64,000 bases of DNA from Mizuhopecten yessoensis. Lineage: Eukaryota. A program made the position numbers and the translations under genes. The notes under the pieces are model-generated. The model made no database searches and was not told where the DNA came from. It saw only the letters and a list, made by a program, of their open reading frames with translations. Each line of letters begins with the position of its first letter. Within the stretch, counting starts at the first letter, position 1. Positions 18,315 to 58,468 of the stretch are shown piece after piece. The DNA lies in NCBI RefSeq assembly GCF_002113885.1, contig NW_018407322.1, forward strand, positions 1,105,026-1,169,025, in the 5' to 3' direction.

Positions 18315-19998
18315 ATGACAAGGGAGTCTGATACCGCACAAGTTATAGAGTTTGATGAGGGACTGGCCGAAGCCAGTAGAGTTGCCATGGAAACCGGGAT
18401 GCTGACCCCACTGGTGAAAGAGGAACTCAAATACACCATACTATCCAGGAGGGAAGCGAATGGCAAAGGTCAAATAGAGGTCACGTTTGATGACCCTCAG
18501 CAATACCAGGTATGTCGTTTTGTAATTAACGTTTGTACTTGAATATTACATGTTAAGGGAAAACTTTATTTAAAGAAAAGTACCCCCTCCTTTTCCCTAG
18601 TCTTAGCCTATGTATCTAGGCAATATTCTCGTTGGTCATTATCTAGAACGATTCAATGTACCATATTTCAAGATAATTATTTAAACTGTGTTGGGTTATA
18701 TCTCAATCCTGAAATAAACTCCATTTTCTACCCGAACTCATGTTTTCTTAATAACGAGCTTGTAACACGATATATCTAATTATCTACATAATGAAATTCT
18801 TTTATCATAACGAAGATATCCATTGAACTTAACAAAAACACAACACGAAAATATGCAGACAAAAATGCAGGAGGCTTTACAGTAGCCAATCCTTTTCTGA
18901 GAACCTTATTAATTTATTCAATTCATAGAAAGACATACATAGAAATCGGAACAGTTACAGAATACATGTATAACTACGGAATGTTTCATAACATTCCCTT
19001 CATTTTTATAGTGTTCGGTCACTCTGAGATATGTATATCGAGATACGTAAAGGTCAATTAGGGATTAGTCTACAAATTAACGGGGTAAACATGACGTGAC
19101 GAACAGCACGTAGCACAAGGGTGATATGTACATGTAATACTGTTACGTCATTTTACCGTCATCACGTGTCCAGTTCTTCAACATATCCATTATTTAGTTG
19201 TTTCATTTAAACATTTTCTCTCTTTCTACGGTTTGTAAATGAAATGATTAAATGTATTTTTTATTTTACATTTTTTTAATTTCATTGGTGTATTCAAGTT
19301 CAAGTTGTTTATTGCCTTGAGTCTTTCGACTCATCAGTTTCGAAAATGAGATAGTTATAAACAATACAATACAATACCATACTCTGAATTGTGGCCATGT
19401 GTCTATAAACGCTTTATTTATCGGGTTTATTTACTTGACCAGTTGACCACAGAGGAGTTGGAGAAAGTGGAGAAACGGCGTCAACAGAACCGAAGTGCTG
19501 CCAGACGATTTCGTCACAGGCAGAAACAAACGTCACATGATTTCATCAAGGTAAAAGTGTTGATATTTCCCTGGCTTTCTTGTTTTACATACTGAGGTGT
19601 CTTTTATTATAAGATAGTATGATATTTATGGTGGATGTTGTGATGCGCTTACTTATACTTACTTATTATTAAGATAAAAACGTTTTATGCTTAACATGTT
19701 AGGTTTTTGACGTTTTAATTTCCATAAATAACGCTTCAAAAAGGAACTCAAATAACGCGCTAAATGTATTATTCGTATGCAACATTGTAACATGCTAATT
19801 TATAGGGTTTTGCTTATTTCATTCTAGAAAATCCAGTCTTTAGAATCCAACAATACGACGTTACGATCCGAACTTGAAAAGGTGAGCCGAGAGAAGGACG
19901 AGTTACAGCGAGAGTTACACGCACATTTACTTCACTGCCCAACTCTCGGGCTAAACAACACCCACCTCTGTCAGGAATATCATCTCTTCGAACAATAG
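18315..19998 (+). CDS. ATF3-like: ATF3/Fos-family bZIP transcription factor, paralog A; exons 18315-18509, 19443-19550, 19828-19998; 157 aa
   Basis: LTPLVKEELKYTI matches the ATF3 N-terminal LTPFVKEELRFAI motif. A 108-nt phase-0 exon carries the basic region KRRQQNRSAARRFRHRQK. The zipper IQSLESNNTTLRSELEKVSREKDELQRELHAHLLHC ends in the Fos/ATF3-type HxxxC. All introns are GT-AG. Confidence 0.92.
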
Positions 19999-20754
19999 GC
20001 CTACAGCTTCACGGGTCAGCTTCAACAAGACACTGGCTGTACACGTGTGTGGTGTCCCAGTACTGGACAAGCCTGCACTTTTTAACGGTTCCCAGTTGGT
20101 GCTACTGTACATTAACAAAACTGTCTACATGGACAAAAAACATGTCTACATTGATCATATTTAGGCGAAATACAACGTTACACGTTTTCCCTATGAATGT
20201 TGATTGTGGATCTGATATTAATGGGTTGTTCTAGAAATCAAGTGTTTGGTTCAAATTAATGATACTGAAACATATCAAAAATGTTATTTTTGTCTAGAAT
20301 TTAGTTAATTCTATATCGTAATAAAATAATAATATTGGACGTTTGTAGGTAGGATATAGTCAATCGAATTTTATAAAATGAACATGACATTGATTTTCGA
20401 TTATTTGTGACCACAATGGTTTGAACACTGAACAGTTTGTGTACAACCCTGGTGCTGTAACGGTCGCTCTACAGAATTCAGCCTCTATTCAAGAACATCC
20501 TTGATTGGATTTTTTTATGATTTGATCATTGGTGAATAGTAATTTTATTGATCTGTATGTTATTTACTTGAACGGTATTATGAATTCCAATTGTTTACTA
20601 TATAGAATCTTTTTTAATGTGTTTAAACAACTAAACCCCCTGTGATAACTTTTTACATTTGTCTATTTCACAATAAAATGTATGTTTATATGCTGTTGGT
20701 GTTTGATCTTATATCTACTTATATATCGTAAAGTGTGTATGTACTATCCAATAG

Positions 20755-22050
20755 CGAACATACGAGTACGTAGGGCATGTGTTTCACTACCTTACATTTA
20801 ACATACGAGCACGTAGAGCATGTGTTTCACTACCTTACATTTAACATACGGGTACGTAGGACATGTGTTTCACTACCTTACATTTAACATACGGGTACGT
20901 AGGACATGTGTTTCACTACCTTACATTTAACATACGGGTACGTAGGACATGTGTTTCACTACCTTACATTTAACATACGGGTACGTAGGACATGTGTTTC
21001 ACTACCTTACATTTAACATACGGGTACGTAGGACATGTGTTTCACTACCTTACATTTAACATACGGGTACGTAGGACATGTGTTTCACTACCTTACATTT
21101 AACATACGGGTACGTAGGACATGTGTTTCACTACCTTACATTTAACATACGGGTACGTAGGACATGTGTTTCACTACCTTACATTTAACATACGGGTACG
21201 TAGGACATGTGTTTCACTACCTTACATTTAACATACGGGTACGTAGGACATGTGTTTCACTACCTTACATTTAACATACGGGTACGTAGGACATGTGTTT
21301 CACTACCTTACATTTAACATACGGGTACGTAGGACATGTGTTTCACTACCTTACATTTAACATACGGGTACGTAGGACATGTGTTTCACTACCTTACATT
21401 TAACATACGGGTACGTAGGACATGTGTTTCACTACCTTACATTTAACATACGGGTACGTAGGACATGTGTTTCACTACCTTACATTTAACATACGGGTAC
21501 GTAGGACATGTGTTTCACTACCTTACATTTAACATACGGGTACGTAGGACATGTGTTTCACTACCTTACATTTAACATACGGGTACGTAGAAGATGTGTT
21601 TCACTACCTTACATTTAACATATGGGTACGTAGGACATGTGTTTCACTACCTTACATTTAACATACGGGTACGTAGGGCATGTGTTACACTACCTTACAT
21701 TTAACATACGGGTACGTAGGACATGTGGTTCACTACCTTACATTTAACATACGAGTACGTAGAGCATGTGTTTCACTACCTTACATTTAACATACGGGTA
21801 CGTAGGACACGTGTTTCACTACCTTACATTTAACATACGGGTACGTAGGACAGATGTTTCACTACCTTACATTTAACATACGGGTACGTAGGACATGTGT
21901 TTCACTACCTTACATTTAACATACGGGTACGAAGGACATGTGTTTCACTACCTTACGTTTAACATACGGGTACGTAGGACATGTGTTACACTACCTTACA
22001 TTTAACATACGGGTACGTAGGACATGTGTTTCACTACCTTACATTTAACG
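20755..22050. repeat. 43-bp minisatellite
   Basis: Unit acatttaacatacgggtacgtaggacatgtgtttcactacctt, about 30 highly homogeneous copies. Confidence 0.97.
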
Positions 22051-24639
22051 CACGGGTCCATGTACATTCCATGTATTAGATACTACCTCAAAGTCATAGC
22101 ACACTGTTGTATCTGTTACGATTTATTCGGCATTTTTTCTGACTTAGAGTTACTTGCGTTTTTTATATCTAAAAGTTAAATGAATATACGAAAGTAAAAT
22201 CTTTCTATTTGCTTTTTATGCTAGTGTACCTCTCCAATGTGAGATTGATTCTAATACGTTTTTTTCTATAGGGAGCATATTTGCTACTCTACCGTCCTAA
22301 TATCTGATAATCTTGAATCTCAGTTATGAGATTTCAGTGTGTACCAAGTTAGAGAATTGTCATACTTCACGCCTCTTTGATCACTTGATTTTAGAGTAAG
22401 CGGATAAAGAATAAAACAATACAGGCACAGAAATAAAGGTAGGAAATATAGGATAACTGTGAACAGATCCCAACAACTTCTAACTTGAATTCCTGTTTAT
22501 AACTTGGTTAGCATATTTTGATTTGAATGTCTTCAATGGTCTCAGTGAAATATACACCAAGAGACTTAAAGTTCGATTGAAGATGCAAAATATGATGTAG
22601 AACATTTTTTGTCTTAAATGATGTTATATGTATTCAGGTTTTCAGTGTTATATCTGGTAGAATGAACATAACTATCAGGGAGCGACAATTGGTTTATATG
22701 TGACAGTTTTCGCTTACGTAATGGTACATGTAGCTAGTGTCATCATTAAGTCGGCTGTCAAGGATATGGGTAACGCTATAACCATTATTGCAAAATTAGT
22801 TGGTAGTTTTTCAAGATCATACTTTATTAATTACACGTTTACTATTCTACACTTCACATGCATGTTGAAATGAGTAATTTCTAAGTTAGTTTTTTGAAGT
22901 AAAACGTTTTTTAAAAAGTTACTATATATTTGGACACTAACTGAAGGACTTTTATCTACATACTTTGTCAACTTATCGTTACTCAAACGGAACTCAGAGG
23001 TGTTCCCCCTATCAGTTATTTTAACATTAGAACATCTGCTTGTTATATATACGCACATTAGACCTATGTTAATACTGTCTGTATTTAGTATTTACTACAA
23101 TAACGTGTAGTGTTGGTGAGCATTGTGATAAGGATGTATCAATTAGTTTTATCATAGTAATATCTAGTGACAGAATTACAAAGGGTTTTGTTCAATACCT
23201 AGGTACATGTGAATTGAAATGCAATATTCTTTCTATCCATTTTTTGTCTGTGTTAGTCTTGGACTAAGATACCAATAAAACAGAAATAGTCTATAATCAA
23301 CGCCTGTCCTAACAGTTACTGTTGGGTATGGTATTATACCTCTTAGGATGTTCCATTGTTGTGACAACTGCCGATATTTCAGTATAATGTACCTATGATA
23401 CTCTGGCCCATTAAAATGAAAACAAATATTTGCAAATGCTTAAAAATTTACAATACCTATAAAAATCCCCAGACCTTAACCTTTTATCAACACATAAAGC
23501 TTATCGTAATGAATATTAATACCTAGATGTAAAAACCAGAGAATACGTATATATACTGCGCAAAAGTAAAAAAGTCCAGGAAGATAAGGTACATTTAAGC
23601 AGTAAATAACAATAGGCAATTGTTATAAATAATACACCAGTATATAAACAATGCAATATAAATTTAGCACACTACTATAGCTACTAGGGTGTTGCCTTAT
23701 TAGTTTATAAAACAAATTGAGCTGTGATTTCCTATGGTATTAAAGGTAGATTACTCATATACACGACGTAGTTGTGGAAGTCACCGTGTGTATTTATAAA
23801 TGTATTTACACAACCCATGCAGTAATTAGACCGTAGCAATATATCTATTTATATCACATGCTACATATTGAACAGTACTTTGGCAGGAAAACAGCATATT
23901 ACGAAATGTTTATAGCAAGGAACAGATGGAATATAATTACCCATAACAGTTAAATGACATATTTGTTATTCATTATAGAATATGTCAATTCATGGAATTG
24001 TATTAACCTTACAGATATCGACTTTAGCCTGTGTAAACCGGTTACTTCTACAGAATATAAAGATAGGTAATTTCTAAAAATAGATGTTACGCTGACGAAA
24101 CAAAATTATCTCCCTTTATCAGTGTTATGATTTCGGAAAGCGCCCGGACAAACATTCTGAGAATCCCTGAGATGGATGTATTCCCGACTAACGCCATATA
24201 TGGAATTGTATTACTTAATGTGAGTATATATTTCACGCTATGAGATTTTGATGCTTGTTTTATCTTTTGAAAGCATGACATTTTTATTGACTTAAAATGC
24301 TTATAATTAGATATTAATACAGCCGTTCTAACCAAACCTAGCACATGATACAGGTAATCAGAGTACGTGTTAATATTAGCTCAGTATAAACATGAGTAAC
24401 TATGACGCTGATTATTTCAATCCTGATGTATTTGTAGTGCCATTTAAAATATTTTCTTCAGTGAAGAAAATGATTCGAAAGTGCCAATTCCTATCAAATC
24501 GCTCAGTTTGCCGTTACCCTATATAAACTAATTATTCAACCAACCTATTCATTAGTCACGTTCTCCCACTAAATACCATACAAACACTAATTTATAACGA
24601 CACCATCACAAACCTAGTGAATCCGCCTACCTACCCATA

Positions 24640-25120
24640 TAAACAACGAGATACACTACCACACGAGACACAAACATAACTTAACACACGAACAACGAGA
24701 TACACCAACACAAAACGAGACAAAAACATAACTTAACACACGAACAACGAGATACACCACCACAAGACGAGACACAAACATAACTTAACCCACGCACAAC
24801 GAGATACACCAACACAAGACGAGACACAAACATGACTTAACACACGAACAACGAGATACACCAACACAAGACGAGACAGATGTACAACTTAACACACGAA
24901 CAACGAGATACACCACCACCCGAGACACACACATAACTTGACACACGCACAACGAGATACACCAACACAAGACCAGACACATGTACAACTTAACACACGC
25001 ACAACGAGATACACCAACACAAGACCAGACACATGTACAACTTAACACACGCACAACGAGATACACCAACACAAGACGAGACACATGTACAACTTAACAC
25101 ACGAACAACGAGATACACCA
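24640..25120. repeat. ~52-bp CA-rich minisatellite
   Basis: Unit approximately aacttaacacacgaacaacgagatacaccaacacaagacgagacacatgtac, about 9 copies. Confidence 0.9.
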
Positions 25121-28100
25121 GAATTTGTTATTGAAAATCACACATGTGCTGTAAAGATAATCTAATTTGTTTGCTATCCAGTTTACACGTGGAGAAGACA
25201 GGAGACTGTCGTACTTCCAAGTTAATTTACTGCCAGCATTTAAACCAATGTTAGCCTCTTCTCTTATTGAGAAGATGATAGCGCGATATATGTAGAAATA
25301 AATAAAAATAATTTAACGTTAACTGATCAAAACCTATATAGATTTAGCTGTATCGTGTAGTTGAATGGTATTAACAAAAATGTACCATTCGGAAGGACAG
25401 ACAAATATTTCTAGCTAAAATACACCCGAAACCAGCTGTTTCTCAAATACCAACCAATGACATTTCTAGCTAGAGGAAGACGAAATATAGCAACAGCATC
25501 GACAATGTCGTGGTCTGCCCACCTATTGCTCCCCCTTTCCTTTATACAAATATAATGACTGTCCTAGAGGGCGCTTTTATATCTAGGCGGCCAAGTGGCG
25601 GTGCTCAGTGTAGAACGTGAGGAATAATTTAGTCACGTGTTTGAGAAAACAATAAAGACAAAAAGTCAAATACCCTGCTATTAATGGGAACTGTGCAAAA
25701 CAGTTGCTTTTCGGTCTGAACAAAATATGCCAAACATCTTAACCAACGTAAATTATACACATAATCACATAGACACACTATCATTTTCACCAAAAATATA
25801 TATGTATGTTACATAGTTATGTTTAGATTATGAGAATGATGTCATGAGCATTAATAGCAACGTAATAATACCCGGATGTACCCGGATATATAAATTAATG
25901 TGGCCCAAGCAACCTGCTCCAGTTCTAAAACATCAAAGAAGACATATAAACCAGGCACCAGAGGAACATCATCAAAGTTAGATGTAAGTCATATCTTATT
26001 ATATTTCTCTTAATTTTAACACATACTATCACTAAAACGAAGACATTATTAATTATAGTTATATTATCAGTCGAAAAAAGTTAAAATACTGTACAAGGTA
26101 CTAATCGAAAGTTTTGAAATCATTTCTATTATAAGATGACCTTTACAACTTTATAGTATCGTTTCATTACTTTGTATGTTTTCATAATTTTAAAGTTATT
26201 ATCAATAACATCCTCTAAGTACGAAAAAAAATGTGATCACTTGAAGTGTTGCAGCCGGCGTATTTATTGTCTAAGTTTTATCATTTACATACCCGAAGGA
26301 CAAACACACTCTGCTTAATGTATCATGATGTATATTTCCAAGTAGAATAGCTACAATAAATGGTTATCAGAATTTAGTAGAAGCTTAGATGTTGTGTAGG
26401 AGAGAAATCAGAAATACCAGTGATATTGTGTGTGAAACGGTTGTCATTAAATTATAAAAATGATTATTATCAAAGCCGCGACCAATTTATTAGATTCTGG
26501 GATAAGGAATCTTTCTTAACCTTTTCGGGGGAAAAAAGAGATTTAAAAAACAAGTTAACAATAATTGACATTAATTGTAATAATACATATAGATGGTTAA
26601 AATGAAATAAACTACCATGTCGATGCCAACAATCAGGTTATATTTTCAGGTTCTATAGGCCTTTTTGGAAAACATCATGATTAAGAACAAAATAAGTGTA
26701 AGCGCTCATTTGAACATACTGTTACAGTAATAGGTCTAGCAATGGAAGTAAAGCTTTTTTGATTTCAGGTGTATTGACATTTTGCTACTACAACTAAATT
26801 TGCTTACTACACACAATTTTCTATTTTAAAACCTCGCGTTCTTAATATATCTGTGCATGAGCATAGCATACATTAATATATTGATTAACATGTAATATAT
26901 CGGCAGGACGCAAAGAAAACGCGTTCTGCACATCAAACACCGCCAAATATATGAACGTTGAAACGTTACATCATGTTCCATTATCTCTAAAATTGGAAGA
27001 AATAAAGTCATTTGTAATGTAGCAATGAGCTTCAGAATTCCATGGGCAACGTTTCATGGCATCAGATTAAAACAAAAATCAAAAGGAGGCTCACGTGTAA
27101 ATATCAAAACATACAGCTGAAGAATAAGATAAGATACGATTGCATTGGTTGAAGATCATAACGTCCTACATTGATGAAATTAAATTGAAGACAAGTGCAA
27201 GTTAAAACAACAATTAGTCTGCTGAATAGAATATAATACTATTTTATCGGACGATATGTTCATTTTAATGAGATACATTGCATTTATTTCTATGCTTATT
27301 AATTAAAGTAGCTGCTTAAGGTAAGAATTGTTCTACTTGAATACCTACTGAAATTCATCTTAAACGAATGGCACAAAGTATACTGACGTCAAAAATCATT
27401 CAACGTTAAATAACCCTGTTACTTAGGAAATGCACACATTAAATTTAAAACTGGGGTAAAATGACGTAATATATCAAACGTGTACCGTAATAATCACCAA
27501 ATATGCCGAAACCTTATTATGCAAGGTCGCACAGATTGGTAAGAAAATATGACATCGACCAAAAAAACAAAAACAAATCATTACATTTGGAGTTTGGGAA
27601 GGTTTAACATCTCCGACAATGCTTCAGGCACCAATGGCGGTATCGGCAGTCATAGCAATGAAAGCGTTCTGAAGCAACATACCTGATTTAGGTAATAGAT
27701 ATACAAAAAATATGTAATAGTAAAAAGTCAGACACATTGAAGCGAAATAAGATGAAAATGAAGAAAGGAAGAATCTATTATAAAAAGAAAAGGGAAAGCA
27801 TGTTGCTGAAACTTATGACCATTTTGTCCATTTAGGACTCATCTGTGTTACTAAAGGTTAACCATTTACATGTTTAACATCGTATGGCATTGCCACTATA
27901 TAACCCTACTAAATTCATATCATAATTGTTAGGTTGGATACCGCTGACGCTCCCTGGTCGACGGCTGTTCTATTCTTTGAAAAAAGCATACACGATACAT
28001 ACACTATTTGAGCTAAATGCTGAATAATAATAGGTGTAAATAGTTTTATTATGAGATGAACAGGTTCCAAAAATGGTTAATATAAGTATTGAACTGCTTT

Positions 28101-28344
28101 CAGTTGGCATTCATAGACAAAATTCAATGAAGCGCGCTAGTGCTTCATGTTGAATTTGCCTTTGTCCAGTTGACATCCATATTGCCTATGAATGCCAACT
28201 GAAAACAGTTCAATGCTTAAATAAATCCATGTCAATGTGTTCCGTGTGTGGAAAATATCAAAATGAAATGTGCCTATAAAACTCCAGTAGATATACTTAT
28301 ATGCATTCAATAGTATACACACTTCTATTCCTAGAACATCAACA

Positions 28345-31540: not shown

Positions 31541-31854
31541 TGAAATAGTAAATCAATGTTAATTTGAATAAACAATTGCTTTCTTACTGAGTACATGTAG
31601 TCATTGGAACATTAAGTAATACATCACTATTGCATTAAGTAAGTAATACATACATGTAAGTATTGAACAAGTACATGTTATACACTACTTTACATTAGGC
31701 AGGTAATGAATATTTGCTATATTAAAAAAGAATAAGTCACTGTTATATTAAGTGAAGCAACACTGCCTCGTTATTTCAGCAAAACTGTATAGGTAACACA
31801 CCTCTGTTACATTGAGTAAATGATAAATCAATGTTACTTAAACTTAGATTTAAA

Positions 31855-33870: not shown

Positions 33871-35989
33871 TAGTAAAAATATTTAATAAAATCCTACAGT
33901 GATGTTTATTTAAATCAGAGATGCAGTACTGTTATAATGAGTAACGCATTACTACTTTTGAGTTAAGGGGTCTCAGAGACTTTCTAACGGCCTGACGTCA
34001 CCAGATAATGTCGTGATATCGGCACTAAACCGGAAGTCATCAGTGTCACGGCCGTGTTGTTGGACACGTGTCATACAGTCACATCAGTATATGTAATGGT
34101 ACAATACAACAACACAATAATCAGTAGGCAACAGTATCAGACAATATGTAAGGTTGTTCATACACTCCGACAGTTCGACCTTCTTCATTTATTAATGTTT
34201 TGCTAGAACTTTATATTTGAAAATGATTCAAATGACATGGCAATACGTCTTAACAAACAATTAAACAAAGTACAATAAAGCATTAGGTACAAACCAAACA
34301 AAAATACAGAACCGACACACATTTGAGTGAGCACTTACTTTACCAATTCAAAATAGACATGAGTGTGTTTTCCAGTTTTGGCCCCGTGTTTCACATCTAT
34401 CAGTTCCTGTCTGATACACAAACATATTCTTTTTAATGTGAGATCATATACTACGAGAAAAAACCTAATGAAGCCTTTATTTGGTCATATATCAAAAAGT
34501 TAGTTTCCGTTTATAGGTTTTATTCCAAAGATTTTCCTCGCATGCAAACTAACAATAATTGAGTTTTGTTTAGCGGAGTTAATGAGATGACATAAAATTG
34601 GGCTTTTCAAATCGCAATACTTACAATTTCGTGTATAGAAAACGAATAGGTTCTGTATTAGGATGAGAAACGGAATGCAGAATTGGTTCTGTAGTTTATT
34701 CATGTAATTGCATAGTTGCCGGAGGCTAGCTGACCTTCACATTACATTAAATAAGTATACAGTGTATTATCATTAAAAAACCCATTATAAACTGGAACCA
34801 ACTGTTAACAAATGTACCGAGCAAAACAGTTGTTTACTTTTCAATTTGCACAGCCGAATGGTTATTTATCAAGAGTGTCTAATGTGTTGACATCTTGTTA
34901 TAAAACATATATAACTCAAATGACTTTGTCTAGATTGAACCTGCTTCAAGCCTTAACATTAGTAGCCAAAAAAGACACCGTTACAAAGGGTTCATATCTG
35001 AAAGACTTCAGCCTACATTAAACAAATACAGGATTAGTCATCACGACTGATTTCAAACGTTCAAGTTCTCGCTTATAACTCTACTCATATGTCTAAGATA
35101 GTTTGATTTCATAGGATTTTTAACGCTTTTCCCTAGGAACTGTTTAACACCACCAGTTTTTGTCACGAAGAGGTCATAATGTCTTTCAGCATCAACTCTG
35201 AGCTCCTATTTGCTCTGCTACTTGTTTGGATACCCGTTGTCCGCCCTTTTGTTGCCGACTTATGATGTCTTTGTTTCGTTGTCACTTCTGTTGTTGTTAC
35301 TGTTCTGGCCTTGTCCTGATGTACAATGTAGTTGACGATACGGTGATTTATTTTACGTATTGCATAATCGATGCTTATGAAAATGTTTTGTGAATGCTTA
35401 CAGGTTTAACTGATAGACACGTCCACAAGGTCGCGCTAGGATCATGAGGATGCAATAATTCTGGAGGCTTCTTTGGTTTCTATGGAAACTGGGAGAATGA
35501 CACATATAATCAAACGGCTTACATTCCAGTCCTGACTGATACACCGCAGGTAAGCACCAAAGTTTTACAGGAGAATAATGGACGGAAAGCAATAATTTGA
35601 CGTATTAAGGACTTGAATAACATTATAAATATTTATGATGTAATGCAACACAGTACGTGGGCACCCCAAAGTGCGTTAAGAATATTACATTTTGAATGCT
35701 TGTATTTATATTAAGAAACTAAAATTAAGATTACCTTTTTTCTGTAATAATTCTAATGGTCCAGGTTATATTTAAAAAAAAAAAGATCAAATGACAGAAA
35801 ATATCTTTCATGGTGTTGCATTTAGCTACGATTAGTCAAATCAATAAAAACAAAATTCGTCAATATTTCAATTCGATGTCACTGCATGATTGGTCCCAGA
35901 TTGCCATAACAACAAACAATTTCTGATTAAAAACAAACAACAACAAAAATACACGTGATAATAATTTGACAAGTGGAGCAGTTAGTTTG

Positions 35990-36100: not shown

Positions 36101-36867
36101 CAGCAACAGACATCGCCTTAGAGCAATAGACAAATAGTTAACAAACTTGCTATGAAGCTTTCACATACTGCGTTACTTTTGTATTTTATCTGTGTCCTTT
36201 GTTAATTATTATATTTTCGAGAAAATCTACTAAAATTGTCTAAATTGTTACAAGAGCAATGTCAATTTTGATTTTGTTCATTTAAATTCTTGATAAGATA
36301 AGTCTAGTAGGTGGTAAACCCGCGGTTTAGACATATTCTTTACCCCCTGGTGGTATTTCCATATCCCTTTAACCTACATATGATATGATTTATTATGTAC
36401 ATACGGGCAAAATAGACTTTAGATATGCAAATTCAAGAAGGTGACGAATTATACATTTGCTATATAATGTAAATTAAGGAAATAATGCGTTAACTAATTT
36501 TGCATACACCTTTCATATTCATAGACAAAAAATATCTTTATATGCTTTTCAAACTTAGTTATACAATTGCATATGGTTTTATTATTTCTTGATATTTTTC
36601 ATATATCAAGAGTAAAATCCCGAGAAAATATTCCCTCCCTGCAGGTTTTGTAATAAAAAGTAAGATATGGAAAAAAACGTTCATTAGTCGTTTTTTTAAC
36701 AATCTTTTGCATTAAATCTGGGACAAAAACGTGAAATATTGACATCGGAAATAAATAGCATTGATTATTGTATCAATATTTAAATTATCATTTTACAGAG
36801 GATTCAACGCTTAGAATATGAAAAACACGTCTAAAATCCGAGTTGTCATTGCTTGTCGATGAAACAA

Positions 36868-37359
36868 GGGGAGTTACAGTGCCATCAGGATGAGTGTGGC
36901 TCGGGTATTTCTACAGGAGAGTTACAGTGCCATCAGGATGAGTGTGGCTCGGGTATTTCTACAGGAGAGTTACAGTGCCATCAGGATGAGTGTGGCTCGG
37001 GTATTTCTACAGGAGAGTTACAGTGCCATCAGGATGAGTGTGGCTCGGGTATTTCTACAGGAGAGTTACAGTGCCATCAGGATGAGTGTGGCTCGGGTAT
37101 TTCTACAGGAGAGTTACAGTGCCATCAGGATGAGTGTGGCTCGGGTATTTCTACAGGAGAGTTACAGTGCCATCAGGATGAGTGTGGCTCGGGTATTTCT
37201 ACAGGAGAGTTACAGTGCCATCAGGATGAGTGTGGCTCGGGTATTTCTACAGGAGAGTTACAGTGCCATCAGGATGAGTGTGGCTCGGGTATTTCTACAG
37301 GAGAGTTACAGTGCCATCTGGATGAGTGTGGCTCGGGTATTTCTACAGGAGAGTTACAG
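36868..37359 (+). repeat. 48-bp minisatellite derived from bZIP exon-3 coding sequence
   Basis: Ten near-identical units encode GELQCHQDECGSGIST, homologous to GKLQSDLEECGCAIST in paralog B exon 3. Confidence 0.92.
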
Positions 37360-40300
37360 TTATTCCAACAAGAGTTCGGAGTACGTATCATTGACAAAAG
37401 GTCCATTAGACCATCCAGCGAAGTAAATGGACAGGCTGACGGACACTACAAGGTCAGTGAAGCTGCTGTAAAACGAGAAATTTTCTCTGAGATAAATTGA
37501 AATAAGATTTTTTTTTTGTGAAGGGGGAATAGCAGAATAATCAGATAAATGGACGGGAGGATGAACAACGTTTCTATGTTTAATGTTTTATAGACGTCGA
37601 AGGGGACGTGTGTCAGACCTCAAACAGGACTTTTAAATACCTATATACACGTATATATTGTAATGTTTAGCTGAAGACAGCCATTGGTGAAGGTACTGAT
37701 TTTCTGCGTAAAGTAAAAATACAGTTATATGAAATCGGGAAGATATCTTTGTGAAATCGTCAATGTTTAAAAGAAGATGATTAGAACACCGAGTCTTCAT
37801 CACAGGGATGTGGCACGGATCTGCATTAATACACATAGTTTAGGACCGTGTGCTTGAGGGTTTTTTCTACGTTTAATCTGTACTTAAAATACTTACAAAG
37901 TGTAAACATACTATAAAACTATATATAACAGCACCCAATTGTATCTGTTAAAGATTTAATCTATTTAATACAGTGTGCTTTAGTTGCATCTTCTATAATG
38001 AACCCATTTAAAGGATTTCTGTTCAGTAAAAGCTATATTTCGATATATTATATTAATTTATTTTATACTTTATTAAATATACATTAGTTATACTATATTC
38101 ATTTAATTTATGTTTTATTTATATATTTAGACCCTTTTTAAAGAGATCTATCCACATATTTCCTGAACTTATTATTAACTCCAAGATGTTTGTGCTGATC
38201 TATTATTTTATTGAGATTGAAGTACAATTAAACTAAACGGGAGTTGTAGTAAGATACTCTCATGATTTAAGATTTGTCGGGGTGGAAAGGCAGTAGCCAG
38301 TCTTTAGACCATTTATCAAATATTCCTGTAAGTTTGCATTCACTACATACACAATGATGTCTAGTGTTTGTTAGGAGTATATCAATTCGTTTTAGTATGA
38401 TCCGATACATAGTGACTTAAGTCCAGTGGGTTTTGCAAAATGATCTAGGTATATTTAAATAATTAATTATATCTGTGAAAAGAACGAAATATTTCTTTTG
38501 TTTTCTATTTTTTTCATTGTCAGTCCTAGGAATTCAAAACATATAAACAAAGACCCGAGAAAAAACCCAAAAATGCTAAGAACTGATTTCTACATTATCT
38601 TTGGATTCCTGATTGATATATTAATATATCGTTGTAAAAACGGGACAAGACAATACTGCACAAATTTATGTTAGTCCCGGAAGACAATCAAGCACTTATA
38701 TGATAATCATAATTACAATTGTAATACCAGAACACTCGCTACTATACCGTAGTCTGACATAGCTAATCGATAACACCCATATATAAACAGTGTGTAGTGT
38801 GGTTTTCTTTTGTATCACAGGTAGGTCACACATACACATAACGTAGTGTATACACCTCACTTAACGTAGTAAGATATCTATTTATAGAGTCATACTTGTA
38901 GTTATATATTGATACCGGCTTTAACCGGTTTAAACCGGTTACTCGAGTGGAACTTATCTGATACCGACTTTAACCGGTCTAAACCGGTCGCGGTAATGGA
39001 ACCTCTTGAATCAGTAATTTCTAAAAATAGATATATGCTGACAAAACAAAATTACCTCCCTTTATTTTAGTATTTTATAGTTAATCTTGGTCAGTGAGAT
39101 GATTTCAGAAAACGTCCGGTCAAATTTTCTGTGACTCTTTACGTTGGATGTATTTTGGACTTACCACATATACAGAATTGTATTAATGAATGTAAGTATA
39201 AAATCCACTTAATTAAAAATATATTGTTTGGTGTTTTTGGTATTATTTTTGAAAGTTAGAGATATGTATTGACTGCTAATGTTTTCGCTAATGTTAGTTA
39301 TACTATTGATATCGATATCAGAAATAGAAACCACATCAAATCCGAGGAATAATACTGGCTATGAGGGCATATGGCAGTCACCTCGTAATGTCATCGTTCT
39401 ATTCGTTCTATTTAAAGTCCCCCCCCCCCCCCCCCCCCCCANCCCCGATAAATCATAATAATTCAATGATCAACCGATCGACTGACAAATGATCCTAGCA
39501 CAATAGCATCGTTGTCGTCTGCCAACAGATCGTCTCACTCCTCATTTTATATTGATTGTCGACTATGAAGATGTTGCTTTATATATACCGTGAGGAGTAT
39601 TTTACCTATGGAGTGATAAACAAGCGAAAGCGGTAAATCAAATAGCCCGTTGTCAAGGACAACTGTAGAATATATTTACTTTTTTATTTGCAGAAAATAC
39701 CATATCAATACCAAGTTGAATGCACATCATCATACATGTATAGACAAATTATCATAATCACTGATGAAACCCGATTGTAATCGGAATAATAAATTCATAT
39801 GACATGAGCAACTCTGCTACAGTCTAATATATATCAAAGCCTATATAAAAACCGTGTACCAGAGGATTCCCTTCAAAATTTTACGTAAGTCATTTGATTT
39901 TCCACTTACTTTCGATTTAAATACATATTGCTACTAGTGCTATAGAGAGTATTTGTTATATTTACAAGATCAAAAGAAACGTTGCCATTCTGCATCAAAT
40001 GCTTACTGAACTTACTTAAGGTTAGTAAGTAAACTTTCAATTCTGAAATAGCAAGAAGTCGATTGCAACTATATCCAAAATATGGTAATCTTATAAGTAA
40101 ATGCATTTTTCTTTGTATTGTTTGATTACATTGTATGTCTTGATTTGACCTTCAGTATTTCAGCCGATATCTCCATGTTTTGTTGTATTACATGTATCAA
40201 AAGCAGTGAACATGTTTTCTTTTTCTTTTTCCAACCATTTTGAAAGAACTCGTTAAACTCATGATATTGTGATTTAGAATGAAATTCATCATTTTGAAAT

Positions 40301-41475
40301 GAAAGGAAAAATTCTAACAAGAAAATCCAGTAAGTGCGATAATCAAAGTTAATTTACACTATGTCCCAGACATTCTGTTTTTACACTATTTCCCAGACAT
40401 TCTGTTTTTTACGTTCCTTATTGAATAAATGTATCTTACTGTTCAATTACAAGTGAAGTAGCTTCAATTGACATCATATCGTTGACAATAGTAATTTGAA
40501 GTAGGAACGAGCTCAATAAGAGATTGTGAAGGTGAAAAATCAGAAATGATAGAAATGTTATTACAGCTATGAGGAATACAGTAGAAACTTCAATAGAATA
40601 TATATTTTATCTTTCACAAACAATTAAAGAGGAAACAGGAAAACATGACATAAGACAGATAAATTTAATTAACGTGAGGACTTCCATGTCGCAAGATGTA
40701 AACAGAAGCACGGTTCTATTCAGGCTGTAATTCGGAAAACATACTTTACCATATTTGTAAACGTTCATTTGAATATAACGTAACAGGCATTAATCTAAAA
40801 TAAACAAATGTCATTAAATATGTAGTTGCACGAGTGCTAAAAAGTGCTTACTATACACAATTTTCTATTTTTAAACCTTACGTTATCTATGTCGCATGAA
40901 CAGAGTATTCATTAACATATTGCTGACTATGTAAAATATCGGTATGACGTAAAGAACACGTGTTCTGCTCGTCACAAACCGCCAAATATATGAATGTTGA
41001 AACGCTGTATAACATTTCACTTTTCCTAAATACAATTTTATGTAGCCAGATTACAATATTGTTGTAAACAACAGAAACAAGATGTCCACCGGGAACATTA
41101 AGAGTATGTCATGGCTTCAGATTATAAGAAGAAAAAAACAACTTGAAGCCCTCGTCTTTGCCATGCGAATGTTAACGCTATGGCACTACTACAATGATAC
41201 TTTCAAATACTCATAAAACTTGATTAAAAAGCTAACAAACAAATCTGCAACATCGAATGAAATAGTATCGATTAAACTATGTCAAGCCTGACTTATATAC
41301 ATTGATAAAGTATGAGAATCTATGTCAATGCTTTGTTTTGGTTTTGTGTTAAACGAGTTCCCGTTGTCGTTGATCTGTATCGGGTTTTGTCTTTGCGTTG
41401 TTGTAAATACATTAGTTCATTTTTCTTGTAACTCGATGCTTCATATTTTGTTTTGTTATAATTTCAGATTTAACA

Positions 41476-42788
41476 ATGGCAGAACCATTAACAAATAATC
41501 CTGACGATTATGAAGATGCCAAAATGCATGAGGCTGCTTTGGTTGCTATGGAAACGGGGAACATGACGCCAATAATCAAACAGGAGTTACGGTGTTTAAT
41601 ACAGTCTAGACGTTTGGCAGAAGGCAAATCTGAATTGTACGTCGATTTCGTACCTCCGGTGATGACAGAGGTAGGCGCGATGTTTTATTAAAAGAAATGG
41701 GATGAAAGGTTGTGATACGACCTATAATACTAAGGATTGTACAACATGTTTTTTTTTGTTTTTTTTTGTTGTTTTTTTTTGTATTCGTTCCTGAAAAAGA
41801 TTAAAGAAACTTTTTTTTTCATGTGACGGACACGACTTTTTTCTGGAAAAGGTCGAGTTTCCTATAATTACCATTTTGGTTAGGTGACAAATTCTATCAG
41901 AAACCATTCGACTGATTTTATGTTAATTATACCATGGCTATGCATGCAATTTTTGCTTTTGCCCGAACGATTCCTTGGTTAATTTGTACATTATCAGTAT
42001 GAATTCATATCATGGTTTTAAAATGTACGATGATCTGCATTGAACATGTTTTATGCAGAAAATTGTAAGTTATAATGTGACTGTTTGATACTTTGTATTA
42101 TAAAATAATGTGTACGTAACAAAATTCTGATGGAGAATACCTTGTTTTTATGATATCTATTTGTTATATTATTTACTTGTTTAACAGCTTACACCAGAAG
42201 AACTCTTAAAGAAAGAAAACAGACGGGAACAAAACAGAATAGCGTCCAGAAAATTCCGGAGAAAGCAGGCATTCTCGATAAATAAATTCAAGAAGGTGAC
42301 GAATATAAAATTCAACGTTAAATGCATGTGTTATTTATTTTTTGCACACATACTCTATGATTAATATACGAACACATGAAATTGATATGTTTAAACTAAT
42401 TGCTCATTTGTATATAATTGCATCCATTTTTTTATGTCATTTTCATTCAAGATTAAAATACCGAAAGCATATTTTCCTGGAATGTAATCTGAATGAGTAA
42501 ATAATATTTTTTTTAGTAATATATTGAATCTGAATAAAAAAAAGTTGAAATAATGGAACCGAAAAGTAGTGTTTATTATTATTATTTTTTTTTTTTTTTT
42601 AGAGAATTCAACGCTTGAAATCTGAAAACACAAGACTATCATCAGAGTTGTCATCACTTGTCGAGGAAACAAACTCTTTACAAGGAAAGCTGCAGTCTGA
42701 TCTGGAGGAGTGTGGCTGTGCCATTTCTACAGTAGCGTCTGACCCACAAAGTGCTGGAGTATATATCATAAGTAAAAGGGCCGTATAG
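41476..42788 (+). CDS. ATF3-like: ATF3/Fos-family bZIP transcription factor, paralog B; exons 41476-41670, 42188-42295, 42603-42788; 162 aa
   Basis: MTPIIKQELRCLIQSRR motif; 108-nt basic exon LTPEELLKKENRREQNRIASRKFRRKQAFSINKFKK; zipper RIQRLKSENTRLSSELSSLVEETNSLQGKL. Introns are GT-AG, phase 0. A probable non-coding first exon ends at 39884 (TATA 39842), with the acceptor at 41467. Confidence 0.9.
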
Positions 42789-42824
42789 CCGTTAAACCAA
42801 GCAAATGGACTGACAGACATATGA

Positions 42825-43013
42825 TATATAAACTGAGTCAATGGAGCCTGGTATGTATACTGAGTCAATGGAGCCTGATATATATACTGAGTCAATGGAG
42901 CCTGATATACATACTGAGTCAATGGAGCCTGGTATATATACTGAGTCAATGGAGCCTGATATATATACTGAGTCAATGGAGCCTGATATATATACTGAGT
43001 CAATGGAGCCTGN
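42825..43013. repeat. 27-bp minisatellite with one AP-1 site per unit, ending at an N
   Basis: Unit tgagtcaatggagcctgatatatatac; TGAGTCA starts at 42834, 42861, 42888, 42915, 42942, 42969 and 42996. Confidence 0.95.
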
Positions 43014-49643: not shown

Positions 49644-50604
49644 ATGGCTGTAAACCTCACCGAAGTGGATCCCAGTGACGAAGAAGAGTGCAAGCTAGCA
49701 GAGGCTGCTCTAGCCTGTTATGAATCAGGATGTCTTACTCCACTGATCAAAGAAGAATTGAAGTACAAAATACATACAAGACGGATGGAACAGGGCAAAG
49801 GGGAACTTCAGGTCCAGTTCACTGCCCCGGACAGATCTGAGGTTCGTTTTAACTGATTAAATTCAAAATAGATATATAATAATATCAAGACACAGTGGCA
49901 TAATAATATGCAGTGTATTCCTGGCAGACTGTATCTTTTACAAATTTTTAAAGGTACAGTCATAGGCGTGTGTGTGTTTTAGGATCATCTTTCAAAGTAG
50001 GTAGGGATGATACCAGAACAAAACCAAAGACACCTTTTATCATTAACAAAATTGTTTCAGTTTGTTTTATCCTAGTTACCTGTGTGAATATCATGTAACA
50101 CTGTTAAAGCGAATAAAAAAAGAACAAACTAGACAAACAAGGTTTAATGCTAACACTTATTACCGGTAAACGACCATTTCTTCTACAGCTGACAGCAGAG
50201 GAAGTTCTGAAGTCAGACAGAAGACGACAACAAAACCGACAAGCAGCACGAACGTTTCGCGAACGGAAGACGACATCGGCAGCTACTATGAATAATGTAC
50301 GCTATTTAATCATTTAAGTTTTACTCTATTGGAAAGAAACTGTGTGAAAAGTATGATTCTTTTTTCGAAAATTTTTTTTAACATAAAAAAGCCTATTCAC
50401 TCCTTGATATTCTAAGTAATGAAATATATTTATTATACGATATATTTATTCTTTTACGTTATTTTACAGACGTTGCAGAAATTACAAACTGACAACGCTC
50501 GACTTAACGCTGACATTGAAAGACTCGTCATGGAAAAGGAATTTTGGCAAGGAAAACTAAATACACTGCTGCTTAGTACAATAGAGGGTTATTTAGACTC
50601 GTGA
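49644..50604 (+). CDS. ATF3-like: ATF3/Fos-family bZIP transcription factor, paralog C; exons 49644-49841, 50189-50296, 50470-50604; 146 aa
   Basis: LTPLIKEELKYKIHTRR motif; 108-nt basic exon LTAEEVLKSDRRRQQNRQAARTFRERKTTSAATMNN; zipper TLQKLQTDNARLNADIERLVMEKEFWQGKL. Introns are GT-AG, phase 0. Confidence 0.9.
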
Positions 50605-55942: not shown

Positions 55943-57862
55943 TACGTTGTCGTCCATTTAATATACTTAAACAACTATCACATTAACCATCATTCATAAT
56001 ATACATTGAAGAAAAAATAGAAGTATACTCCTCTTTTACATTACAAATGGTGATGGACTTGACAAACTATGTCGTTATCAACTGCATTTGTTGTCGTTTT
56101 CCGAAAAAATAATAATAATGATGTTATTTTATTATGATATTTTATTTTCAGTTATTTTCTTTTCACGGTAATGCTTTTGTTCATCAGTTAACAGTTTTTC
56201 CCCACATTTCTGTGTTCTTTCGTTATAACCGTCGCAACCTTGGTGTAAATATGCTCCTTTTCTGGTTTTACCTTTGACAGTGTAGATAATATAGCAATTC
56301 TTTTCTCTCAGTACCTTTTGCTGGATTATTTAGCAAGACTAATAAGCTTAATGGTTTTTAAATTCTTGTATTATAACGATTTCCTATTAATTTTCATGTC
56401 GTTTCATGTTCTGTATAATGAAATTTCAACTCAACAAAAAGGTTTCTCTGTCACTTTTTGTCTGTGAAGAAGTTTTATTAAAGCTCCAAGCTTCAGGTTC
56501 GAATTTCTTTTTCATTAAGCATAAAACAAAAATCAAAATTATAATCGCAAAACATAGACGGCGAATTTTTCACACGCTTTTAATACATATCTTATAGCAT
56601 GAAATGGTCCATTCCTTATTTATTAGCCGTAGATTTCTACTGAATCCTAAATGCCAAGGAATGAAGTTGGTCTTTTTTTTAAAATTTGTACACGTTTTCA
56701 GTGTAAATATGTTAACACTTTTCGATGTTTCGTTATCAAGTTTGACCTGGACGTTTATAATACTCCTCAATATGATACAATAAACAACGATTGGGAGTTA
56801 TCCCCAACTATAGATATTGCTGAGGATTTTTGCATATTAATTCCGACATAAATCTTCATCTTCTGCGAAATTGTTTTAGTCGTGAAGATTATACAATGTA
56901 TCAGCTTGAGAATGAATCAGGCGATATTTGCTCTGTAATGGCTGCAACTGCATATGGCTATCGCAGCAACCATAGGCAGTGTCATTACCAACTGCATTGC
57001 AGCAAAATACATACATGTAATACGCATCTCCTTCATAGTAAGTTTGCAGCATAACAATTAGCACATCTATAACACAGAAAAGACATTTGAAATCAGTTCA
57101 ATAGCTATATTATTTTTGTCCAAGGCTTTATCATTTAAATTCCAAGCAACGAAACTTCTAGAAAGAAGATTTGCCTGATTTAACAGTGTCATGATATGGG
57201 CATGTTGACATCATGAACATATTTCAGGCTTTTTATTATTATAACGTCGTAAATATGTTCGTGTTACAGTTTCGAAACTAAAAATACAAATTGCATTTAA
57301 GTCGTCATAGTGTTCCAACTGTCTTATTTCCACGTCATCTTTTAGATTTGACTTGTGTCAGTCATATTTTATTTTGTCTCTGATTGGTTGAATTGGTTGG
57401 GGAGAAAACGCCATACCTATTTATAGATAATATCTGTTTAACCGACGAACATTTTGTCGGTTTTCCAAAATAGTTACATCATTTCTAAAAATATATAAAA
57501 GTGCTGACGCATTTATTGGACGGTGTAGACGTGGTCTGTTATCATTTGTAGACAGTCGTCCAAGTTAGGGGCATTCGAACACAAGAGATTATGTAAATGT
57601 CTCCTCAGTTCTGTGGTTGTAAATTTAAACTGCTTTTGCTCAAATGGTTTCTCAGTAGTCAAAACTTTCTTAATATTGAAAAATATGTATCCTCACATTA
57701 AAACATATCGTTATACGGGACATTAAGAACAACAAATTTCCCTTTTGTTTGTTTGTTTTTCTCCTGATTTAGTATTAGGTCAGTTTACACCGACTATAGA
57801 ACTCTTTTCGAAACAACTAATCTTTACATTCTTTAAATATGACCTTGACGTTTTCAGATATA

Positions 57863-58391
57863 ATGGCTGCGGCTTCAGCCCATGGGTATGGTCTGGTGGA
57901 TGACAAGTTGGTTAAGGCCACACAAGAATGTCTGGACACAGGCAGCATCATGCCGATGCTCAAGGAAGAACTCAGATGTACTATACAAAACAGACGACTA
58001 GCGGAGGGCAAGACAGAACTGACCGTTCAATTCACACCCCCAACAGAGCAACAGGTGAGTTGAATCAACCTTTAATAAGGATGTGAGTTGACGGTATTTT
58101 CCCTATGGTATCATTGTGTGTAAATACTGTGGTGATTCTTCCTTTTCCACTTCACATAGACTTATTTCATAAATAAATTTATCATTGAAATTCCAAAAAT
58201 GAAGTTTATTGATGTAACACGGATAACCGTATTAATTGAAATCGATGTCTTTTTAACAATGACTACATGCCCTTCCCTTACAGCTTAATGCAGAAGAGAT
58301 CATAAAGAAGGAAAACAGAAGGGAACAGAACAGAAGAGCAGCACGAAAGTTTCGCCAGAAACAAGCTACATTATCTCAAAACTTCCAAAAG
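57863..58391 (+). CDS. ATF3-like: ATF3/Fos-family bZIP transcription factor, paralog D, partial; exons 57863-58054 and 58284-58391; zipper exon not found in the window
   Basis: IMPMLKEELRCTIQNRR motif; 108-nt basic exon LNAEEIIKKENRREQNRRAARKFRQKQATLSQNFQK. Acceptor ttttcag at 57851-57857; candidate TATA at about 57493 and non-coding exon donor at about 57593. Confidence 0.87.
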
Positions 58392-58468
58392 GTAGCGTCT
58401 AAATGTTCTTCTATCTCATGCCTTCCAAAGGAAAATATAACACTCGTAGGTAAAAATACACAATAGTT

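Follow-up and report, generated by a model that had tools for sequence, protein, structure and literature searches.

Five residues of the bZIP basic region contact bases; position 19 is among them, and the redox role of a Cys at this position was demonstrated in Fos and Jun, not specifically in ATF3. BATF has Ser19 (NRxAAQKSRQRQ) and is phospho-regulated, ATF4 binds TGA-type half-sites, and a 108-bp exon is present in both human ATF3 and FOS. It has been reported that C19 is redox-controlled and S19 phospho-controlled, that ATF3 always has C19 in vertebrates and invertebrates, and that F19 is restricted to fungi (PMC1479340). The residues specific to the Yap family include Gln and Phe at the equivalents of Gcn4 234 and 242 (PMC6545440); in Pap1, for which the contact residues have been listed, Phe93 is one of five base-contacting residues (PMC7261193) and Gln85 lies beside the phosphate backbone, near Arg82 (PMC7261193, PMC3865217). 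NFIL3 (NxxAAxxSR) binds TTACGTAA, with S90 and A86 contacting the methyl of the first T in TTAC and the position-19 Ser contacting the outer T common to TGAC and TTAC (PMC10941009). Because NFIL3 reads TTAC with Ser at this position, a change of specificity is not inferable from Phe alone, and Phe is neither needed for a TTAC half-site nor known to be sufficient for it. In the literature searched, Phe at position 19 is described only in fungi, and no description of a Phe-type ATF3 subfamily was found.

The window analysed here, a 64,000-nt stretch of the genome of the scallop Mizuhopecten yessoensis, contains four tandem bZIP genes on the + strand, A, B, C and D, and the remnant of a fifth copy, with the following features.

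18315..18509, + strand: gene A (LOC110454639, P0001), coding exon 1, with the start Met and the N-terminal block GMLTPLVKEELKYTILSRR; donor CAG/GTATGT
19443..19550, + strand: gene A basic-region exon (RRQQNRSAARRFRHRQK), 108 nt, phase 0; Phe TTT at 19509-19511
19828..19998, + strand: gene A zipper exon and stop codon (KIQSLESNNTTLRSELEKVSREKDELQRELHAHLLHCP)
35425..35589, + strand: exon 1 of the fifth, B-like copy, a remnant with three in-frame stops and a 3-residue alignment gap
36822..37407, + strand: exon-3 remnant of the dead B-like copy, its 3' part expanded into a 48-nt minisatellite (GELQCHQDECGSGIST repeats)
39093..39191, + strand: gene B non-coding 5' exon, spliced to 41468 in probable RNA contigs; the start is possibly further upstream
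41468..41670, + strand: gene B (ATF-3-like, P0005), first coding exon, with ATG at 41476 and the N-terminal block GNMTPIIKQELRCLIQSRR
42188..42295, + strand: gene B basic-region exon (RREQNRIASRKFRRKQ), 108 nt; Ser at +4, Phe TTC at 42254-42256
42603..42788, + strand: gene B zipper exon and stop codon; the transcript extends into a TGAGTCA minisatellite
49644..49841, + strand: gene C (LOC110454667, P0008), coding exon 1
50189..50296, + strand: gene C basic-region exon (RRQQNRQAARTFRERK), 108 nt; Phe TTT at 50255-50257
50470..50604, + strand: gene C zipper exon and stop codon
57863..58054, + strand: gene D (ATF-3-like isoform X2, P0006), coding exon 1
58284..58391, + strand: gene D basic-region exon (RREQNRRAARKFRQKQ), 108 nt; Phe TTT at 58350-58352
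G000:C3995:1169269-1169406, about 244 nt past the window end: gene D zipper exon

A six-frame scan of the whole window returned exactly four QNRxAxRxFR matches, on the + strand only: QNRSAARRFR in gene A (19485-19514), QNRIASRKFR in B (42230-42259), QNRQAARTFR(ERK) in C (50231-50260) and QNRRAARKFR in D (58326-58355). Each lies, as QNRxA[A/S]RxFR, on a 108-nt phase-0 exon preceded by cag and followed by gt. Genes A, B, C and D correspond to the NCBI M. yessoensis proteins P0001, P0005, P0008 and P0006, to which they are identical wherever they lie inside the window; the scan and this identity bear out the sequence-only reading of four genes in which the Cys of the basic region is replaced by Phe. 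The Phe codons (TTT, TTC, TTT and TTT, respectively) are one transversion away from Cys TGT/TGC. The predicted proteins of about 144-162 aa are encoded by three coding exons each, with an extra non-coding first exon in gene B, and belong to the bZIP superfamily: exon 2 alone scored 19.6-27.3 bits against Pfam bZIP_1 and 17.4-24.6 bits against bZIP_2 (27.3 and 24.2 bits for gene A), the bZIP_2 cut-off was exceeded by exon 2 of genes A and C, and the full-length proteins carry PF00170/PF07716. The Pfam listings show neither a Cys-rich domain nor any DNA-binding domain other than bZIP, and the proteins stop soon after the zipper, which in the Phe-type proteins has four to five heptads and terminates in H..CP. 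The heptads of gene A, read off the sequence, run F/L-L-L-V-L-H at N+18, +25, +32, +39, +46 and +53; as in human ATF3, the second zipper heptad has Asn at 'a'. Contigs from runs X1 and X2, probably RNA, join the non-coding exon, exon 1 and exon 2 of gene B at GT..AG sites, the first joint (39191>41468) being found in both runs, and the same contig reaches exon 3 a few bases inside the predicted acceptor, beyond a T-run (aligner cut). No exon-2 remnant of the dead copy was detected in the window; exon-1-like loci number at least 12 in the scallop genome.

The family to which these genes belong was assembled by word search and comprised 82 proteins with a readable basic region. One point of the earlier reading calls for correction, as Phe is not confined to the four scallop genes: it occupies position 19 (+7, counted from the basic-region Asn) in 69 of the 82 proteins, from 19 named bivalve and gastropod genera. 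None of these 69 sequences departs from R(-4), N, A(+3), F or R(+8); Gln is found at -1 in 67 (the other two are R+F), Ala at +4 likewise in 67, with Ser in gene B, and Arg, Lys or Thr at +6. Rare family members have Ser, His or Leu at position 19, so the constraint has exceptions. Among the 150 best ATF3/JDP2/Fos relatives, Cys was present in 137 of the 138 readable basic regions, as was R/K at -1. Cephalopods and other mollusc classes are missing from the family, possibly only as an artefact of the word search. The constancy of Phe across 69 family members of many species puts it beyond chance and, taken with the invariance of the rest of the basic region, points to purifying selection that maintains a functional DNA-binding surface. 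Phe is the fixed state of this paralog subfamily across bivalves and gastropods, and the redox-sensitive Cys has been lost from its basic region. Genes A to D inherited Phe as paralogs and constitute one observation, not four independent ones.

The Phe-type proteins and ATF3 have in common an N-terminal block, TG.LTPLIKEELK..IQSRR. As LTPxxKEEL(K/R), it is present in A to D (weaker in D, IMPMLKEELR) and in most family members, in vertebrate (LTPFVKEELR, LTPLVKEELR), amphioxus (LTPIIKEELK) and hemichordate ATF3 representatives, and in Cys-type relatives from a chiton, annelids, a nemertean and amphioxus; it is absent from the Fos rows, and a motif scan did not find it in the JDP2 representatives. 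The 108-nt phase-0 exon, starting from L(T/S)xEE, has identical boundaries in the scallop Cys-type ATF3 P0129 and the Phe-type P0073, which share one contig, other than that of A to D, and lie 50 kb apart with P0073 downstream. Further likenesses to canonical ATF3 are the non-coding first exon of gene B and the zipper end, H..CP or HRPTC. The N-terminal motif, the exon and the tree described below bear out the ATF3 ancestry proposed earlier. The Phe subfamily differs from canonical ATF3 in having Phe for Cys19, Gln for Arg/Lys at -1 and Gln for Lys at +11, in its length of 144-162 aa as against 243 aa for the scallop canonical protein, and in its many paralogs per genome, where ATF3 has one. 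Since Cys19, a mark of the ATF3 family, is replaced by Phe in A to D as in the other Phe-type members, these genes are filed as a derived ATF3 subfamily rather than as canonical ATF3. Canonical Cys-type ATF3 persists in bivalve and gastropod genomes, and also in annelids, nemerteans and a chiton; as bivalves and gastropods keep it, the Phe group is a paralogous subfamily and not its ortholog. That Phe might be the ordinary state of lophotrochozoan ATF3 is accordingly true of the paralog family and untrue of the Cys-type orthologs.

Trees were rooted on Fos and did not include BATF, ATF4 or Yap, no BATF sequence being among the search returns. In the careful tree, a lophotrochozoan ATF3 clade containing all Phe-type and Cys-type ATF3-like proteins was recovered with support of 96/97, and within the same tree a canonical mollusc Cys-type ATF3 clade had support of 98/96. 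Each of A to D has 1:1 orthologs in Pecten, Argopecten and Ylistrum (support 97-100), JDP2 is sister to vertebrate ATF3, and in the quick, Fos-rooted trees the Fos rows split from all others by a 98-100 branch. Of the bZIP phylogeny called for earlier, these trees give the placement within ATF3 as against Fos. A single origin of the non-Cys state was not rejected (AU p = 0.44). The clade of all non-Cys members has weak support (72/63) and includes four Cys-type sequences, one of them from a chiton, so that any count or polarity of the changes is provisional.

With Yap1/Pap1 (RxxxNxxAQxxFR) the Phe subfamily shares Arg -4, Gln -1, Asn, Arg +1, Ala +3, Phe +7 and Arg +8, and a redox Cys is missing from both basic regions. 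The base-contacting Gln(+4) of Yap, in contrast, is Ala in the Phe subfamily (Ser in gene B), as the sequence-only reading had correctly noted, and Yap Ala(+6) is replaced by Arg, Lys or Thr; the C-terminal Cys-rich domain is missing, there is no relation in zipper, exon structure or N-terminus, and neither overall bZIP similarity to Yap nor a fungal architecture was found. Two of the four signature residues (Gln(-1), Gln(+4), Ala(+6), Phe/Tyr(+7)) are therefore present, and the description of the basic region as Yap1-like stands for Gln(-1) and Phe(+7) and lapses for the other two; the resemblance is convergent. The Phe-type basic region is as similar to that of animal ATF4 (QNKxAAxRYR) as to that of Yap. 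ATF4/ATF5 (QNKxAAxRYRQKK) share Gln -1, Ala-Ala +3/+4, Arg +6 and the Arg-Gln-Lys of +8 to +10, with +7 aromatic in both groups, and ATF4 is identical to the Phe-type consensus at 10 of 18 basic-region positions (hand count from the alignment). Against solved structures the Phe-type profile scored 47.5 bits for FosB, 42.7 for ATF4, which ranked fifth and headed the matches from outside the Fos family, and 26.0 for Pap1. ATF4 differs in having Tyr, phosphorylatable in principle, in place of Phe, and both the 108-nt exon and the ATF3-type N-terminal block speak against descent from ATF4, which the tree did not contain. This animal protein with a similar Gln/aromatic pair was a comparison missing from the earlier reading. 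JDP2 and BATF, small AP-1-type bZIPs that are mostly partner modulators, resemble the mollusc proteins in consisting of a bZIP and little else, and some Phe-family members are automatically named BATF3; JDP2, however, keeps Cys19, and the N-terminal block, which the very short BATF proteins lack, argues against BATF membership.

In the most probable account, the four tandem paralogs A to D belong to a subfamily peculiar to molluscs that was born when ATF3 duplicated and has grown since, with Gln(-1)/Phe19 fixed. The Cys-type copy was retained beside the new subfamily, and the linked changes, Arg/Lys to Gln(-1) and, at base-contacting position 19, Cys to Phe (NxxAAxxFR), preceded the split of bivalves and gastropods. 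The Phe-type proteins may still be DNA-binding bZIP dimers, in which Phe would pack on the methyl of the outer thymine of the half-site, as do the NFIL3 Ser and the listed Pap1 Phe93, and neither oxidation of Cys19 nor phosphorylation of Ser19 could any longer switch off DNA binding. Because Ala-Ala is retained at +3/+4, the half-site is more likely to be TGA-type, as for ATF3 and ATF4, than the full Yap TTAC, though affinity or flank preference would be changed. That the linked Gln(-1)/Phe19 pair gives this conchiferan-mollusc branch of the AP-1 superfamily a half-site or flank preference of its own, unlike that of ATF3 and short of the full Yap one, together with blindness to the Fos/Jun/ATF3 redox switch, is put forward tentatively, as a possibility we rate low.

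A partial shift of preference, as the earlier reading suggested, or a full one to the Yap/Pap1 site (TTAC: TTACTAA or TTACGTAA), which would turn these proteins into AP-1 relatives with new targets, is unlikely. Two of the four Yap-specific residues are present and strictly co-vary (67 Q+F vs 2 R+F), and the Pap1 counterparts contact a base (Phe93) or lie by the backbone (Gln85), but the base-contacting Gln(+4) and the Ala(+6) are absent, the Phe-type profile matches Pap1 far less well than FosB or ATF4, and ATF4, which binds TGA-type sites, has the same Gln/aromatic pair. NFIL3, moreover, binds TTACGTAA with Ser19 on an outer T that TGAC and TTAC both possess (PMC10941009). It is quite improbable that Phe is simply tolerated in small proteins that mainly sequester partners, in the dominant-negative manner of JDP2 or BATF, and for which base contact is unimportant. 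Their size, the lack of a recognisable activation domain, the fast expansion and decay of the family, as seen in the dead copy and the exon-1-like loci, and the occasional Ser, His or Leu at position 19 would suit such a role; the conservation of F, R(-4), N, A(+3) and R(+8) in all 69 proteins, and of Ala(+4) in 67, across the bivalve-gastropod split is nevertheless what selection for a functional DNA-contact surface would leave, and not a mark of constraint having been relaxed. We give hardly any credence to the genes being BATF3 or Fos/kayak orthologs instead of ATF3 derivatives, as suggested by database names ('basic leucine zipper transcriptional factor ATF-like 3', 'transcription factor kayak', 'c-Fos-like', 'jun-B') and by FosB and c-Fos as the top solved-structure matches, the PDB matches listed including no chain of ATF3 or JDP2: the Fos rows stand apart in the quick, Fos-rooted trees, they lack the LTPxxKEEL block found in vertebrate, amphioxus and hemichordate ATF3, and the Phe group lies, in a tree without BATF, inside the clade with Cys-type lophotrochozoan ATF3.

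An ATF3-derived subfamily with fixed Phe19 is an animal family that breaks both stated rules, that ATF3 always has Cys and that Phe is fungal only (PMC1479340). It is hundreds of millions of years old, has expanded in bivalves and gastropods, and is expressed, as indicated by the probable RNA contigs of gene B. As the Cys-type parent persists in the same genomes, Phe-type and Cys-type ATF3 in one species offer a natural paired comparison of DNA specificity and oxidant sensitivity. Should the subfamily have its own half-site and be redox-blind, a second stress-response network, oxidation-proof, would operate in molluscs next to the canonical one, and the repeated gene expansions would represent diversification of that network. 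Automatic names for Phe-type family proteins are unreliable; members are variously called ATF-3-like, BATF3, kayak, c-Fos-like and jun-B, and a canonical Cys-type gene has been auto-named 'chromatin assembly factor 1 subunit A-like'.

Phe occupies position 19 of the basic region, seven residues after the invariant Asn (Phe-type, NxxAAxxFR, as against the Cys-type NxxAAxxCR), in the four tandem ATF3-like bZIP genes A to D. A six-frame scan of the window for QNRxAxRxFR returned exactly four matches, all on the + strand, and recovered the four basic regions at the places where a sequence-only reading had put them. Each lies in an exon of 108 nt, in phase 0 at both ends, preceded by cag and followed by gt.

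Basic-region exons of the four ATF3-like genes in the window.
19443-19550, + strand, basic-region exon of gene A
42188-42295, + strand, basic-region exon of gene B
50189-50296, + strand, basic-region exon of gene C
58284-58391, + strand, basic-region exon of gene D

An all-versus-all comparison of open stretches showed that the upstream exon is conserved in all four genes and the downstream zipper exon in three; the zipper exon of gene D was absent from 58392-64000 in heptad and tblastn scans and lies approximately 244 nt past the window end. The three-exon model of gene A is identical to a 157-aa NCBI protein of M. yessoensis (P0001), found by a word search with its exon-1 stretch, and genes B, C, and D match exactly, over their in-window portion, NCBI proteins of 162 aa (P0005, ‘ATF-3-like’), 146 aa (P0008), and 144 aa (P0006, ‘ATF-3-like isoform X2’), respectively. 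These NCBI proteins, rather than exons spliced together into query models, were used for the searches. No long DNA-level duplication linking genes A to D was found.

The distribution of the Phe state was determined with a profile built from the A orthologs and exon pieces of B, C, and D, excluding isolated exon-3 pieces, which MAFFT misaligned. Gene A exon 1 or P0001 as lone query retrieved only scallop orthologs of A; the alignment query reached the remaining family, and the profile word search recovered 131 proteins. Across 82 readable family basic regions, position 19 was Phe in 69, Cys in 10, and Ser, His, and Leu in one each. Phe-type proteins occur in 19 named genera, including among bivalves the scallops, oysters, pearl oyster, mussel, Mya, Dreissena, a unionid, and the protobranch Solemya, and among gastropods Haliotis, Lottia, Patella, Pomacea, Babylonia, and Elysia. 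M. yessoensis itself carries at least six Phe-type genes, and a dozen or more exon-1-like loci are present in its genome. The Phe state ascribed to these four paralogs is thus real, but that description was too narrow, as it spans an ATF3-derived subfamily of conchiferan molluscs (69/82 family proteins). Every member of the Phe group (n=69) has R(-4), N, A(+3), F(+7), and R(+8), and A(+4) is present in 67 members, gene B being one of the two that carry Ser. A second change, Gln(-1) directly before the Asn, accompanies Phe: the family basic regions comprise 67 with Gln(-1) and Phe, two with Arg(-1) and Phe, five with Gln(-1) and Cys, and five with Arg or Lys(-1) and Cys. By comparison, among the 150 best ATF3/JDP2/Fos relatives from an exhaustive HMMER search with a Cys-type profile, Cys was found in 137 of 138 readable basic regions and the residue before Asn was Arg or Lys in 137 and Gln in none. 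The sole Phe at position 19 in this set belongs to P0187, a 745-aa protein of the brittle star Amphiura filiformis with several bZIP-like stretches, one of them RRERNRVAAARFR, which suggests that Phe19 was acquired independently in an echinoderm. The single Ser, His, and Leu residues belong to P0060 (Haliotis), P0074 (Pomacea), and P0075 (Potamilus), so position 19 changed again in a few lineages.

The ATF3 ancestry proposed from the sequence was borne out by a shared N-terminal block, the 108-nt exon, and membership of a lophotrochozoan ATF3 clade. The block TG.LTPLIKEELK.TIQSRRL.EGK is common to Phe-type and Cys-type family members, and its core LTPxxKEEL(K/R) is also found in vertebrate ATF3 representatives and amphioxus ATF3. 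A careful maximum-likelihood tree used 67 rows and 144 columns, without the column for position 19; trees were rooted on Fos, and BATF, ATF4, and Yap sequences, which none of the searches returned, are absent from their rows. All lophotrochozoan rows formed one clade (bootstrap/SH-aLRT support 96/97), within which the Cys-type clade (98/96) is canonical mollusc ATF3, with M. yessoensis P0129, Mytilus ATF-3-like, Patella ATF-3, Haliotis ATF3-like, and Solemya as members; the database name of P0129, ‘chromatin assembly factor 1 subunit A-like’, is a mis-naming. Nemertean and annelid homologs, as well as the single chiton homolog seen, are also Cys-type. It had been considered that Phe might simply be the ordinary state of lophotrochozoan ATF3 orthologs; this fails for the true orthologs, in which Cys is kept. 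Genes A to D each have 1:1 orthologs in Pecten, Argopecten, and Ylistrum (support 97-100), and genes B, C, and D group with their Pecten orthologs (99/92). The smallest clade with all 34 non-Cys rows (38 tips, 72/63) includes four Cys rows, namely the chiton and three others, and constraining all non-Cys rows together cost 1.25 log-likelihood units (AU p = 0.44); a single origin of the non-Cys state is therefore not rejected. Another Phe-type gene, P0073 (L010, 119508-120837), lies 50 kb downstream of P0129 (L009, C2660:67851-69505) and shares its strand; in each, the basic region is encoded by a 108-nt phase-0 exon whose boundaries match those in genes A to D. The adjacency of these two genes on one strand is consistent with the Phe type having arisen from ATF3 by tandem duplication. 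The same contig has an extra exon-1-like match at 136437-136559. Taken together, the Phe-type proteins form an ancient conchiferan-mollusc subfamily derived from ATF3. Five proteins are Cys-type yet carry Gln before Asn (EQNRRAAxKCR, QQNKDAARRCR) and may be intermediates or reversals: P0118 of M. yessoensis, whose branch is too long to place, and P0078, P0079, P0080, and P0107 from Logan assemblies, of which P0078, P0079, and P0107 nest inside the Phe-type clade and P0080 lies outside the tree rows.

The Yap/Pap1 signature is RxxxNxxAQxxFR, in which Gln(-1), Gln(+4), Ala(+6), and Phe/Tyr(+7) are the Yap-specific residues (PMC6545440, PMC7261193). The mollusc subfamily shares Gln(-1) and Phe(+7) with these fungal proteins but has neither Ala(+6) nor the base-contacting Gln(+4), whose absence the sequence-only reading had rightly pointed out. 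In searches of solved structures, P0001 as lone query gave at most weak, unranked bZIP matches, and the 36-aa exon by itself had no match. With a profile of 24 Phe-type bZIP domains, the scores were 47.5 bits for FosB, 45.8 for c-Fos, 42.7 for ATF4, 36.3 for C/EBP-beta, 31.5 for a fungal Yap-type bZIP (7aw7), and 26.0 for Pap1. ATF4, which reads EQNKTAATRYRQKK in the profile alignment, has Gln(-1), Ala-Ala, Arg(+6), an aromatic residue at +7, and then Arg-Gln-Lys, all as in the Phe type. Counted by hand, the Phe-type consensus has the same residue as ATF4 at 10/18 basic-region positions and as the fungal protein at 9/17, which, at the level of sequence, points to ATF4/ATF5 as the closest animal precedent, one that the sequence-only reading had not considered. 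In the structure of NFIL3 bound to TTACGTAA, the methyl group on the first half-site T is contacted by Ser at position 19 and by Ala(+3) (PMC10941009). TGAC and TTAC share this T, and NxxAAxxSR suffices for NFIL3 to read TTAC; TTAC recognition therefore does not require Phe, and given where Phe sits, recognition of the second base need not depend on it. Yap-like half-site specificity is considered unlikely, and since Ala-Ala is retained, a TGA-type half-site with changed affinity or flank preference would be the likelier target. It might also be supposed that the proteins do no more than sequester partners and that their basic region has decayed, but the whole contact surface is strictly invariant, which argues against such decay. 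The subfamily has lost the oxidisable Cys without gaining a Ser or Tyr hydroxyl in its place, and we infer that DNA binding escapes both oxidation of Cys19 and phosphorylation of Ser19, at least as homodimers or with another Phe-type subunit. No description of the Phe state in scallop, oyster, or bivalve ATF3 or bZIP surveys was found in the searched literature, and a study sampling Lottia and Capitella does not mention it (Jindrich & Degnan 2016, PMC4736632). With Phe-type and Cys-type genes in one genome, a possible functional shift is directly testable.

Gene B is probably expressed, as it is present in contigs of two public runs that are probably RNA; no gene B reads were seen in polyA raw-read run X17. 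At GT..AG junctions, the contigs connect a non-coding first exon (to 39191) with 41468, and likewise 41670 with 42188. The same contig picks up exon 3 a few bases beyond the predicted acceptor, on the far side of a T-run at which the aligner breaks off, before continuing into the 3' region. A 27-nt minisatellite at 42825-43013, which begins 40 nt past the gene B stop and contains seven perfect TGAGTCA (AP-1/TRE) heptamers, is placed in the gene B 3' UTR because the probable RNA contigs pass from exon 3 into it. Over the whole window, AP-1 sites (TGASTCA) are not enriched (9 observed vs 9.9 expected); one of the three N letters in the window is at 43013. Upstream of gene B, transcription of 38142-40235 is seen in contigs as well as polyA reads of both mate orientations; the region partly overlaps the non-coding first exon (39093-39191) and may be either a longer gene B first exon or an RNA of its own. 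The stretch 38960-39208 is weakly similar (68% over 250 bp) to 24014-24236.

A dead, B-like fifth gene copy sits between A and B, for which no exon-2 remnant was detected.

Remnants of the dead copy.
35425-35589, exon-1 remnant, contains stops
36822-37407, exon-3 remnant, its tail grown into a 48-nt minisatellite of about ten repeats encoding GELQCHQDECGSGIST

Long tandem-repeat arrays also occur between the genes, at 1-785, 8883-10543, 20844-22082, 24684-25127, and 29862-30503, the third of which lies just downstream of gene A and comprises about ten copies with a 129-nt period.
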